Assembly: GCA_904063045.1 (NCBI GenBank) | Contig: CAJFCJ010000004.1 | Location: 1,357,713-1,421,712, forward strand | DNA length: 64,000 bases | Source of the DNA: Dimorphilus gyrociliatus | Taxonomy: Eukaryota > Animalia > Annelida | Direction: 5' to 3' | In this document: piece by piece, positions 22,557 to 27,722 of the stretch | Layout of the letters: every line of letters begins with the position of its first letter | How positions within the stretch are numbered: the stretch's first letter is position 1 | The notes under the pieces: model-generated | What the model was told of the DNA's origin: nothing | Seen by the model: only the letters and a program-made list of their open reading frames with translations | Database searches by the model: none | Made by a program: the position numbers and the translations under genes

Positions 22557-25500
22557 ATGTTTGGCTGGAAACTTCTAGTAATAACCTTAATTGTTACAAT
22601 TGTTGTCTGTAATGCTTCCGCGAAGAATGTTACCAAAAATACTAAAAAAGTAAATAATAAGGATAAAAAGATTTTGGAGAGCAAATCATCGAAAATAACT
22701 GTTAAACCCAAACAAAAAAAATTACCTGTAAAAGTAACAAAAAGCCCAAAGCCAATAAAAAATAACTTAAATAAAAATTCAACAAAACATAAAAATAAGC
22801 AAATTGGAAATAATTTAAAATTATCCAAGCAGAAACCAAATCATCCACAGCTTTTATTTGACCGCAATCACTTAAAAGCTTTAAGGAATGGATGGAATAA
22901 GACTTCACCCTTTATAAAGCAACAGATTATGCGTGTTGTTGAAAGAGACATAAAGTTTCCTCTAACGGATTTAAATGAAACCTTCATAACGAAACATGGA
23001 TTCATACTTGGATCAAATTTACCACTGTACACTATATACTGCGAAATTCATCAAAATAAAACCTGTAAGGAAAATCTATTGGAAATGATGGATTTTGTTG
23101 TCAAGTTGAAAACTTGGAAGGATGAAAGGTTTATGAGCGATAAAACGTTATCGACTATGATATCAGGTTTTACGATATCAATCGATATAATTATGGATTC
23201 TTTACCATCTTGGAGAATATCAAAATACACAAAAAAGTTGGAACTAGAAGCTCAAAGGTTATATGCAGATTCTAGATCTTTGTGGTGGGGCTCGAATCCT
23301 CTGCATGAAATTAGCGTAAATAATCATATGGCCCTCTTTCTTGTTGGTTTATTTGGTAAAATACAAAAAAACAATAATTCCTCTCTGTGGATAGTTTCCG
23401 GTGGACGTTTTCTCGATCGTGTTCTGCACATAGCTAATGGGGTCACCGACGGCTCACTACCTATATCCTTATTAGATAGTCAGAAAGCAAGCTTGCCCCT
23501 GATGATTTATATTCACCTGACAGAACGTCACTACCAAATACCTGCAGCTGCCCAAAGTTGGATATATTCCCATTTAGTCTTTACGCTTCACGAAATTTTA
23601 CCACTTTTCTCCATTCCTGATTCAGTTGTTGATCAACACCCCCGTTGGTGTTACGGACCAGAAGCACAATTAGCTTTTCTTGATCGCTTCGCGGCAGCTG
23701 ATGGCAGAGCTTCATGGATTTTGAATAAAATCCTTGTAAATAATGCATACAAAGATATAATCTCCGTAAGAAAGTCGTGGAAAGTTACACCTAGTCTATT
23801 TTATTATTTAATTTGGAAAGCCGATGGTATAAAACCCACTAGACCTCGCCTCACTGCAGGCTTATTTCACCTCCCAGATTCAGGTTTATTGAGGTATAGA
23901 GATACTAACTGGGACTTATTTCTCAGAGCTTCAAGACCCTATGGGCCTACAGTTCAAGATGCTCTAGAAAAATCTACATTAGATTTCAGTTATACAAATT
24001 TAACTTCTCTTGATGAACCCCCTTATCAGGGCGGATTTAATTTAATTATTCGAGGAATTCCTGTTTTCACTGCCTTTCAAGGAAGTGTTTTTACTGACCT
24101 ACAGAATTCAATTAGTTTTCTTGTTAGAAACTCAGACGAAAATGGTTGCCTTAAACCATGGTTTGGACAACTTGGAGAATGTTCGGAAAGACGCTCCTTA
24201 TTTTCGAAATCAGATGTTATAGCTGCTACAAGAACGATAAAGGAATTGACGCTTTTGGCAGTAGACATAGCTGACGCTTATCCATCCTTTCTAAAATTAA
24301 ATAGCGTTCAGAGAAGAGTCCTCGTTTTAGGATCCGAAATGCTGATCATTGTTGACCATATTCACGCACACAGTGACACTCCTATAAGATTAATGTCCTC
24401 TAGTTTTGCTAATATGTACTTTTCATGGGAGGAGGGTAAAAGTTTACCAGGTTTTCCCGTCAACTTTCTAAACACTCCTGACGGTAAAATACAAGTACAA
24501 GTTACGTCCCTCAGCTCTACAAGCAAACGAGTAAAAACGGAGATTGTCAATACCACTGTAATTGAGAAGAGCGGAGGAAAGATTGATGTAAGCCTTCTAA
24601 ATGTCACCTTTGCACTAGATGATAGTTTAAGTACAATCGTTTATATAATTGGTGCACCAAATGTTCAAGTTATATCAAATAGAATGGGTATGTCTAATAG
24701 AAGAGATTCATTCTTTGTTCATTTACAATCTGATAAGCAGGCAGGATTATTTCTTATATTTTATTATACTTTAATTAAAATATTAAACTCAATTTTGCAG
24801 TATCAAATTAGAAAATATACTGTAGATTTTTCACTTTTTATTAGTAATAATTATCTTAAAATCTAATTTAAGAGCTATTTATCTTTTAATCATTATCAAT
24901 TTATTAAGGATCTCTCGTTAATCTTATTTTTTTCCAAGTAAAATAAATTTATGGCGATTTATAAGAGGAAATCCTGCCTTCAAATAGGAATACGAAGTTA
25001 TTATGAGATACGCCGATAGGAACATTTGCGAAATTAACGATTTAAAAACGAATGATACAGTATCGTTTGAAGCTTTTAAATCGGTTAAAAAAAGAAAGAT
25101 AATGGACCTAAAGAGGATTGGAGCCCGTTCAAGTCCTTTTTTTAAAAGAGTTAGAAATGCAAAAGAGTTTGGAAAAAAGTTTAGAAAATATTCACCATTG
25201 ACAAAAGATTTCGAATCAGATGGATTTGCCGACATAGATCATATTGTTGAAAAGGATTTGATAAAGAAAGCTACTCCAACAAAACCCTCTACCACACCCA
25301 TTACAACCACTGTTCCGGGAACAACTACTCAATTTACTGACTGGAATATGAAAGGATTAAACTCTATTGAAAGAGATATCTTCCTACGAATTCACTCTAG
25401 AAAGATTGCCAGTAACGAAGAAGTAAAACAGCAACGACACGAAGTAAATTACAATAAATTGCCGAATTTATCAACACATCCCACAGTAGCATTTACAGTT

Positions 25501-25599
25501 ATTGTTATACTTTCATTTATTCTTGCTATAATCATCTTTAAAATATTTATATTCAGGTTTTTTCGTAGATTTCTGAGATTTATTTTTGTTCGATCGTAA
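22557..25599 (+). CDS. Dermatan-sulfate epimerase (DSE/DSEL)-like protein with signal peptide and C-terminal TM; exons 22557-24740 and 24988-25599 (predicted GC-AG intron)
   Basis: Motifs resemble human DSE as recalled: VTDGSL, ERHY, WCYGPEAQLAFLDRF (DSE WFYGPESQLVFLDKF), CLKPWFGQLGEC (CFSPWVGQVTEDC), AYPSFLKLNSVQRRVLVLGSEMLIIVDHIH ([30 protein letters not shown]). TM segment TVAFTVIVILSFILAIIIFKIFIF. Confidence 0.85.
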
Positions 25600-25943: not shown

Positions 25944-27722
25944 ATGAAGCTTGTTATCATTGGTTTAGCTGTATTTTTAGGTTTGTATTTACTAACTAAA
26001 TAGTAGAGTATGAAAAGTAAATATGTTGAAGAAAATATACTCTTTTACAATCATAGCTGGAAGTTTTGCTCGAATAGAACCAAATGAAGAATTTCGAGCT
26101 GTTTGGGTAGCCACCGTTAATAATTTGGATTGGCCATCGAGTAAAACATTACGGGTTCCTCAACAGATTCTTGAATTACAGTAAATAATTATTTAGATAT
26201 TTAGGGTCTATAAAATTTTATTGGTCTCTCTTAAGCCATACTTATTATTCTGTAATTGTTTTTATAGGAGAATTATCGATTACGTCAAAGAGAGTCGTAT
26301 GAATGCTATTATCTTTCAAGTAAAAGTTTTCTCTTTCTTTCATCTTTCACTGCCTTAATTATTCTCCCAGATTGTTAATATGCTATTTATTGTATATTAT
26401 TTTTAATGTTTAAAACAATAATCATCTAGATACGACCGGCTGGTGACGCTCTTTACAACAGTTCAATTGAACCTTGGAGTGTTTATATGACTAACAGTCA
26501 AGGGACTCCACCTTCACCTTTTTACGATCCCTTGAGTTTTCTAATAGCAAAAGCCCATGAGCAGAACATAGAAGTTCATGCTTGGGTAAATCCATACCGT
26601 GCAAATTTGAGACCGGATTGGACTGGTTTAGCCCCAAATCATATGGCTAACGAATTTAGGCAGTATGCTTACCCGTACGGAAACTATCTGTGGATGGATC
26701 CAGGAGCCAAACCTGTTCAAGACCGTCTATCAAAGGTAATAAGGGACGTTCTCGATCGATACGATGTTGATGGTATCCACTGGGATGATTACTTTTATCC
26801 ATATCCAGTTAATAGTGTATCGTTTCCGGATGATAAGACTTATAACGATTATCTATCGGCTGGAGGAGCTTTGCCTAGGGACGATTGGAGAAGAAAGAAC
26901 GTTAATGATCTTGTCCAACGAGTTTATAACGAAATCAAAGCGTTAAAGCGTCACGTTAAATTTAGTATTAGCCCATTTGGTATCTATCGACCGGGTCATC
27001 CAGAGGGGATGCCTCGCCCTATAGCAGGATTTGATCAGTATACGCAGTTATATGCCGATGCTAAACTGTGGCTACAAAACGGCTGGGTCGACTTTCTGTC
27101 TCCTCAACTCTACTGGGAAATTGATCCCCCAGCACAAAGCTATACTACGTTGTTAAATTGGTGGTGCAATGTAAATCAACAGTCAAAAAATAGACACATT
27201 TATGCTGGTAACGCTGTTTATAAAATTGAAAATAACGATTGGCCTGCAAATGAAATAAAACGCCAAATAGAAGTTTCTCGATCTTTAACAGAATTAAACT
27301 CCCTTGGAAATGTTCATTTTCGGGTTAAACTACTTATGAATAACATCAAAGGAATAGCAGACTTATTAAAAAATCACGTTTATACTAAAGTAGCTGCAAT
27401 TCCCCCAATGCCTTGGCTAGCAAATTCAACATTTATTGAAACGGCAAAAGGAGTTAGAACTGGTGGTTGTTTAATAATCTGGAATAAACCCACGCAACCT
27501 GTTCATAAGTGGGGCCTTTTTAAATGGAGAGATAATGAATGGTCTCTAACTAACATTCTTAGCGGAAAATTAATTCATGCTGAAGTAAGAGAACCCGGTA
27601 GATATGCAGTAGCAGCCTATAATGAAGGATGGGTTAAAAGCATCCTATCTGATCAAGTTGAAGTTACTGAATTTCAGTTAAACGAATTTGATCCCTACTT
27701 TGCTGCTGGGTGCGATCAATAA
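25944..27722 (+). CDS. Secreted GHL10 / DUF187 (YddW/DigH-like) glycosyl hydrolase; exons 25944-25980, 26057-26180, 26268-26319, 26430-27722
   Basis: Spliced N-terminus MKLVIIGLAVFLAGSFARIEPNEEFRAVWVATVNNLDWPS...MNAIIFQ|IRPAGDALY...EPWS, followed by DPL, EVHAWVNPYR, DGIHWDDYFYPY, FSISPFG, DFLSPQLYW and AIPPMPWL. These are hallmark GHL10 motifs. Three in-frame GT-AG introns. Confidence 0.92.

Follow-up and report, generated by a model that had tools for sequence, protein, structure and literature searches.

Gene model and locus

The gene described here lies at positions 22557-25599 of a stretch of 64,000 nucleotides from contig CAJFCJ010000004.1 of the miniature marine annelid Dimorphilus gyrociliatus, and it encodes a homologue of dermatan sulfate epimerase (DSE) in which the residues needed for epimerisation have been replaced or deleted. 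The whole stretch is called the window, and all positions in it refer to its plus strand. The gene is named C4 throughout. Its paralogs in the same genome are named C19 (protein P0001, locus L002), C23 (P0048, L003/L014, G000:C23:600062-602314) and C1 (P0061), and two further copies, P0002 (C19-like, locus L009) and P0064 (C23-like), come from a related species represented by the Logan assemblies of SRR23372216/28/29. The window is AT-rich, with a GC content of 0.24-0.36, and the gene sits in DNA of about 30% GC. A first-pass annotation of this DNA had taken 22557-25599 for an intact open reading frame (ORF). Both coding frames are indeed open, but they belong to two exons and not to one ORF: the first ORF runs over 769 codons and stops at 24866 (22557..24866), and the second frame stays open between 24988 and 25599. 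The six peptide motifs quoted in that annotation are all found in the translation of the first ORF.

In the best model, exon 1 (22557..24740, 728 codons) covers the signal peptide, the Lys-rich linker and the DSE-like domain. It is followed by a predicted phase 0 intron of 247 nucleotides with GC-AG borders (24741..24987), and by exon 2 (24988..25599, 203 codons and a stop), which encodes a conserved juxtamembrane region and the C-terminal tail and can be aligned from end to end with exon 2 of C19 and of the relative's copy. This structure has been adopted because the end of conservation, the donor boundary and the acceptor context agree in three copies. Protein conservation of C4 with C19 and P0002 stops exactly past codon 728, and a donor is present at this boundary in all of them (CAG/GCAGGA in C4, AAG/GCAAGA in C19, and GT in the related species). 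At the other end, each copy has an AG acceptor, then three codons and then the conserved V-I-M-K/R-Y. The corresponding introns are located at 3402-3619 of L002 and at about 2550-2780 of L009. It looks, from these comparisons, like a conserved GC-AG intron whose donor is GC in both D. gyrociliatus paralogs and GT in the relative. An alternative GT donor at 24822 would add 27 unconserved codons; when C4 is set beside C19 and the copy of the related species, the GC donor at 24741 is the better choice.

Architecture of the encoded protein

The protein starts with a hydrophobic segment of about residues 1-22 (22557..22622), a putative signal peptide or anchor whose 19-residue Kyte-Doolittle mean exceeds 2.0 at residues 1-2. 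Residues 23-93 (22623..22835) form a linker that contains 24 Lys in 71 amino acids and carries a net charge of +22; it has no counterpart in vertebrate DSEs, and the basic linkers of the paralogs are shorter. The DS-epimerase-like domain, defined by phmmer, AF2, Foldseek and VIA-align, occupies residues 94-728 (635 amino acids, 22836..24740) and consists of a predicted alpha/alpha toroid and a beta-sandwich. Its isoelectric point (pI) is 9.0, as against about 6.7-6.9 for the domains of Gadus DSE and of Owenia. In exon 2, a juxtamembrane stretch of about 160 amino acids is conserved with the paralogs and precedes a C-terminal transmembrane helix at exon 2 residues ~163-193 (25474..25566), with a hydropathy mean of up to 3.2 and a position that is kept in the paralogs. 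A C-terminal membrane anchor is also carried by the human enzyme DS-epi1 (PMC8006597). Exon 1 holds eleven N-x-S/T sequons, one of which is an NVT that matches the conserved glycan site at human Asn648 and whose N and T are invariant in a MAFFT alignment of seven family sequences. The hydropathy profile and the exon 2 alignment describe a secretory and membrane topology, with signal peptide, luminal domain, conserved sequon and C-terminal anchor.

Homology, predicted fold and family background

When all PDB chains were searched with phmmer, the only chain matched was 6hzn_A, human DS-epi1, at E 5.6e-41 over query residues 94-719, and a profile of intact DSEs matches the C4 locus at E 2.3e-81. 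No Pfam family was detected at E <= 0.1 in either exon, PF16332 (DSE-like_N / DUF4962) included; the P0002 protein of the related species does carry PF16332. An AF2 model of residues 94-728, built from a 40-sequence alignment, has a mean pLDDT of 88.7 and a pTM of 0.89. Its top structural match is again 6hzn_A (Foldseek E 4.8e-36, TM 0.83), and VIA-align superposes 617 residues on that chain with Z 37.7 and a root mean square deviation of 3.6 Å; the next matches are bacterial glycosaminoglycan (GAG) and alginate lyases, with Z 20-28. C4 is a DSE family homologue by sequence, predicted fold and topology, in line with the first-pass description of a DSE-like protein with a well-kept fold.

Searched exhaustively with HMMER, 1.84 billion representatives yielded only 89 relatives in total, all of them at or below about 30% identity except for a paralog cluster at 53%. 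In the family alignment, which was restricted to relatives at least 590 amino acids long, His205, Tyr261, His450, His452 and Tyr473 (human numbering) are kept by nearly all members, from bird DSEL and fish DSE to lamprey, amphioxus, crinoid, coral and the annelid Owenia, and the functional columns are conserved at 94-100% among 51 intact representatives. C4 keeps 44 of the 76 columns that are conserved at >=90% in these 51 proteins, among them the motif W-x-Y-G-P-E-x-Q-L-x-F-L-D, a G-Q, the Cys pair and single W, D, R, Y and N positions. Its losses cluster in three active-site motifs and include two invariant basic columns, Gadus R282 and K491. Sporadic substitutions have been seen elsewhere in the family. 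For example, His205 is replaced by Leu in a DSEL-like protein of Styela clava (P0031), Capitella teleta (P0015) has Arg at position 205 and a His one residue earlier, and P0008 (Logan SRR32924703) has Lys for Tyr473 and Gln for His452. These three may be further partly degenerate DSE-like proteins, judging from the alignment; a complete loss as in C4 is absent from them.

Loss of the active site

The active site of DS-epi1 has been described in detail. The catalytic triad is formed by His205, Tyr261 and Tyr473; His450 contacts the carboxylate via water; His452, Glu470 and Asn481 are the Mn2+ ligands; and Trp98 stacks on N-acetylgalactosamine (GalNAc) in subsite -1 (PMC8006597). In the reaction, the Tyr261/Tyr473 pair abstracts H5 and His205 protonates the carboxylate, and the Mn-bearing loop is needed as well; mutation of any of these residues abolishes or strongly reduces the activity (PMC8006597). 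The equivalent positions of C4 were mapped by means of four alignments, namely phmmer to 6hzn_A, MAFFT with 7 sequences, MAFFT FFT-NS-i with about 70 sequences, and hmmalign to a profile of ten intact DSEs. UniProt numbering is obtained from the 6hzn_A chain index by adding 22, an offset confirmed on the His452, Glu470, Tyr473 and Asn481 of PMC8006597.

The four alignments agree on every position. Human Trp98 corresponds to His147 (codon 22995..22997). Human His203 is kept as His250 and is followed by Glu251 and by Ile252 in the place of the catalytic His205 (23304..23312), and Tyr261 is replaced by Asp307 (codon 23475..23477). Asp486 stands for His450, followed by Glu487 and by Pro488 for the Mn ligand His452 (24012..24020). 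Finally, the stretch 24078..24104 runs from Gln508 in the place of Tyr473 through Gln516 in the place of the Mn ligand Asn481, and Glu470 is deleted just upstream. In the alignment to the intact-DSE profile, the posterior is '*' or '9' (>=0.9) at the functional columns: '*' at the His205 and Tyr261 sites, and '9' and '*' at the His450 and His452 pair. Furthermore, the segments around His205, Tyr261 and His450 are gap-free between conserved anchors and contain no spare His or Tyr able to slide into place. The substitution of His205, Tyr261 and His450, which the first-pass annotation had read by eye, has therefore been upheld by proper alignment, which does not put His, Tyr and His at the catalytic positions. 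The loss goes beyond those three residues, as Tyr473, His452, Glu470, Asn481 and Trp98 are gone too.

Where an active DS-epimerase (EC 5.1.3.19) has its catalytic set, C4 has Ile, Asp, Gln and Asp, and its Mn2+ site reads Pro, deletion, Gln. From the absence of the Tyr261/Tyr473 pair, of His205 and of the Mn site, epimerisation by the known route is excluded, so that C4, to judge from its aligned residues, cannot turn glucuronic acid into iduronic acid by the known mechanism. It is very probable that the predicted protein is not an epimerase at all. The definition of a pseudoenzyme, that is, a homologue of an active enzyme without key catalytic residues, is supported for C4 by the same alignments.

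Paralogs and the chondroitin toolkit of the genome

The D. gyrociliatus assembly (77.9 Mb) was searched with the window protein, with a fish DSE and with an intact-DSE profile made of invertebrate and vertebrate DSEs. Each search returned the same four DSE-like loci, C4, C19, C23 and C1, and none of the three found a fifth locus or an intact DSE in this assembly. His205, Tyr261, His450 and Tyr473 are missing from all four genes; the catalytically intact paralog whose search had been proposed at the outset is thus not among them, and every locus is degenerate. C19 is 50-55% identical to C4 and has an identical exon structure. With 30% identity (E 8e-99), C23 is the locus most similar to vertebrate DSE. 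His205, Tyr261 and Tyr473 are missing from it, but Trp98 and His452 are retained and the two remaining Mn-ligand positions are occupied by His and Glu, so that C23 may still bind a metal. C1 is the most divergent paralog. P0002 and P0064 of the related species are degenerate in like manner. No C4 orthologue was found in that species, even when a 260-amino-acid piece was used to detect fragmentary orthologues. Since the three paralogs are degenerate too, dermatan sulfate is probably not produced by a DSE-type enzyme in this worm, as far as gene content can tell.

The G-H-E-H-P-D-Q motif, written as a degenerate DNA pattern, was also run against the whole genome, and it gave no more matches than a control. 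The one tidy match, at C1:2463639, belongs to a tetratricopeptide (TPR) repeat of a kinesin light chain and not to a DSE. With regard to chondroitin synthesis and sulfation, the genome contains no fewer than 9 loci of the CHGN family (chondroitin GalNAc-transferase/synthase) and 9 of Sulfotransfer_2. Two of the CHGN genes on the C19 contig, G000:C19:2065853-2067493 on the minus strand and 2080696-2082333 on the plus strand, have identical scores of 410.4 bits and are inverted and 13 kb apart; this pair looks like a very recent duplication.

Phylogeny and selection

In a maximum-likelihood tree, the six degenerate sequences fall inside a clade with Owenia and Capitella with a support of 98, which places C4, by sequence descent, among the progeny of an annelid DSE gene. 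The six form a single group in the best tree (SH-aLRT 77), a grouping to which long-branch attraction possibly contributes. The C4/C19 clade stands on a stem of 1.93 substitutions per site, and the branches that follow are short, measuring 0.58 (C4), 0.12 (C19) and 0.20 (P0002). A stem of this length would correspond to a burst of change followed by purifying selection.

Constraint after the stem has been estimated with the Nei-Gojobori method. Between C4 and C19, pN is 0.33 and pS is 0.74 (saturated), for an omega of about 0.14 or less; between C19 and its orthologue P0002, pN is 0.17 and pS 0.69, for an omega of about 0.10. Identity is 50% between C4 and C19, 48% between C4 and P0002, and 72% between C19 and P0002. 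C4 is therefore equidistant from the other two, which are closer to each other, so the C4/C19 duplication predates the split of the species and the frame of C4 has been kept since. The open frame is not due to chance either, because about 8% of random codons would be stops at this base composition and exon 1 is open over 728 codons. Taken as a pairwise bound against C19, the omega value supports that C4 is maintained by purifying selection and is not a pseudogene, and the earlier claim of a maintained gene holds to that extent, with both exons intact and synonymous sites saturated.

Comparison with known systems

The most direct comparison is with human DS-epi1 (DSE, EC 5.1.3.19, 6HZN). Homology with C4 extends over about 630 residues at 22-27% identity and covers the two-domain fold, and both proteins share signal peptide, NVT sequon, Cys pair and C-terminal anchor; C4 differs in its extra Lys-rich linker and in lacking the eight functional residues listed above (His205, Tyr261, Tyr473, His450, His452, Glu470, Asn481 and Trp98). 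The annelid DSE/DSEL-like proteins of Owenia fusiformis (CAH1784677.1) and Capitella teleta (ELU04192.1) share with C4 their clade, a similar length and the lack of a DSEL sulfotransferase domain. However, all catalytic and metal residues are present in Owenia, and Tyr261, His450, His452 and Tyr473 are retained in Capitella, whereas C4 stands on the long stem. More distant are the bacterial heparinases II/III, the PL15/PL17 alginate lyases and the PL33/PL35 GAG lyases, which have the same toroid plus sandwich fold (Z 20-28). These lyases have the His/Tyr catalytic set and metal site of DS-epi1, and the conservation of the active-site core of DS-epimerases is described as deep, reaching from bacteria-like lyases as far as the human enzyme (PMC8006597). 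Sequence similarity between them and C4 is not detectable, and C4 is without their common catalytic set. By analogy only, heparanase-2 (HPSE2) may be mentioned, an inactive paralog, in the catalytic sense, of an enzyme that processes GAGs (PMC12406646); its fold is unrelated (GH79) and its active paralog coexists with it, whereas the D. gyrociliatus genome has no active DSE paralog. A catalytically dead DSE was not found reported in the literature, in D. gyrociliatus or elsewhere.

Possible functions

A non-catalytic binding or scaffolding role for the C4 protein is the explanation we favour, with modest confidence, since the gene is under selection, its product is routed to the secretory pathway and strongly basic, and the genome is rich in chondroitin genes. 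C4 would then be a pseudo-epimerase, a membrane glycoprotein of the secretory pathway with the whole DS-epi1 architecture (signal peptide, toroid, beta-sandwich, NVT sequon, Cys pair and anchor), acting in the lumen of the Golgi or endoplasmic reticulum or at the cell surface. The basic luminal domain, together with the Lys-rich stalk, would serve to bind chondroitin chains or other polyanionic glycans or, alternatively, partner enzymes, for example the chondroitin sulfotransferases encoded by the genome. The pI of about 9 of the luminal domain and the 24-Lys linker are weakly in favour of GAG binding.

Several observations weigh against this role. With a genome of 30% GC, the basic charge may follow from codon usage that is rich in A and T. 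Trp98 and the basic columns near the active site (Gadus R282 and K491) are lost, which speaks against canonical chondroitin binding. Within six residues of the old functional sites, 44% of positions are identical in C4, C19 and P0002, as against 47.5% elsewhere in the domain (p = 0.62, Fisher test), and in true DSEs no other surface is as conserved as the cleft (PMC8006597). Binding in the old cleft is thus unsupported, because the substrate contacts are lost and the cleft is not preferentially conserved; a glycan-binding site, if there is one, may lie elsewhere, for instance in the Lys-rich linker. The first-pass proposal of a kept but non-catalytic fold agrees with the loss of residues and the retention of the fold, whereas its GAG lectin, scaffold or regulator role is not borne out by a cleft of average conservation for the domain that has lost Trp98 and the two basic columns. 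Moreover, C4 is the faster-evolving member of the C4/C19 pair, with a branch of 0.58 set against 0.29 for C19; the omega values are only bounded, because dS is saturated (pS 0.69-0.75); the C4 protein is absent from the public protein collection, in a word search and in an exact-sequence look-up of the ORF; and an acid at 261 and an Asp at 450 are common to C4, C19 and the related species' copy, which leaves room for new chemistry. As for the missing entry, the C4 gene may be lacking from the public annotation or be modelled differently there; paralog C19, the nearest public protein to C4, is present in NCBI as an unnamed protein product.

That shared acidity is the starting point of an unlikely, though not negligible, alternative, in which C4 is a neofunctionalised enzyme with a new glycan chemistry (acid-catalysed hydrolysis, or another lyase or epimerase reaction) via His250, Asp307 and Asp486. 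The His203 position is kept, position 261 is acidic (D/E/E) and position 450 is Asp (D/D/D) in C4, C19 and the related species' copy; a long stem followed by constraint is what a change of function classically leaves behind; and small active-site changes switch between lyase and epimerase activity in the DSE fold, according to the authors of PMC8006597. The sharing is nevertheless at chance level, with about four of eight alignable functional sites identical in three sequences whose background identity is about 50%, and the neighbourhoods of those sites are no better conserved than the domain mean. C4 has lost the metal site as well as the Trp, Arg and Lys that contact the substrate, and the other two paralogs differ at the positions shared by C4, C19 and the relative (N/S/Y and R/M/L). 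It is most improbable that C4 is still a glucuronic acid C5-epimerase with catalytic residues recruited from elsewhere in the cleft. The predicted fold and the cleft-forming domains are intact and machinery for chondroitin synthesis is present in the genome, but the four acid/base residues, three Mn ligands and Trp98 have all been lost together; in human DS-epi1, mutation of just one of these residues is enough to destroy the activity, and the same residues are conserved even in bacterial lyases with the DSE fold (PMC8006597). The aligned segments offer no alternative His or Tyr. Quite improbable, too, is a gene in decay, a recently inactivated duplicate that has acquired no stop codons yet. 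The faster evolution of C4 relative to C19, its absence from the protein collection and the failure to find its orthologue in the related species would suit such a gene. On the other hand, 728 plus 203 codons are free of stops at a base composition that would turn about 8% of random codons into stops, and saturated synonymous sites together with a pN of 0.33 point to an old duplication whose frame has been kept since; splice sites, exon 2, sequon, Cys pair and membrane anchor are conserved with the paralogs.

Wider meaning

The favoured binding or scaffolding role for C4 can be extended, tentatively and with more doubt than confidence, to the lineage as a whole. An annelid lineage comprising Dimorphilus and at least one relative may have turned its entire DS-epimerase family into non-epimerases, which were then expanded and kept under selection, and the DSE fold would have another job in the secretory pathway, one that does not depend on catalysis. 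Such a job could be, for example, the chaperoning or templating of chondroitin chains for sulfotransferases. In a more radical version, a new active site that works with carboxylates may have arisen in the old cleft on the C4/C19 branch. DS-epimerases are treated as strictly catalytic; this worm keeps four selected genes with the DSE fold, none of them catalytically competent, and offers a natural setting in which to ask what tasks the fold performs besides epimerisation. If the extended reading is true, a catalysis-independent job might also be hidden in vertebrate DSE and DSEL. The chondroitin chains of D. gyrociliatus are predicted to be without DSE-made iduronic acid. A caution for annotation follows as well, in that automatic naming would label these four proteins dermatan-sulfate epimerases.

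Neighbouring gene

At 0.9 kb downstream of the DSE-like gene, an ORF of 411 amino acids (26487-27722, plus strand) matches the Pfam family GHL10 (PF02638) at E 1.5e-46. GHL10 is a glycosyl-hydrolase-like family found mostly in bacteria.

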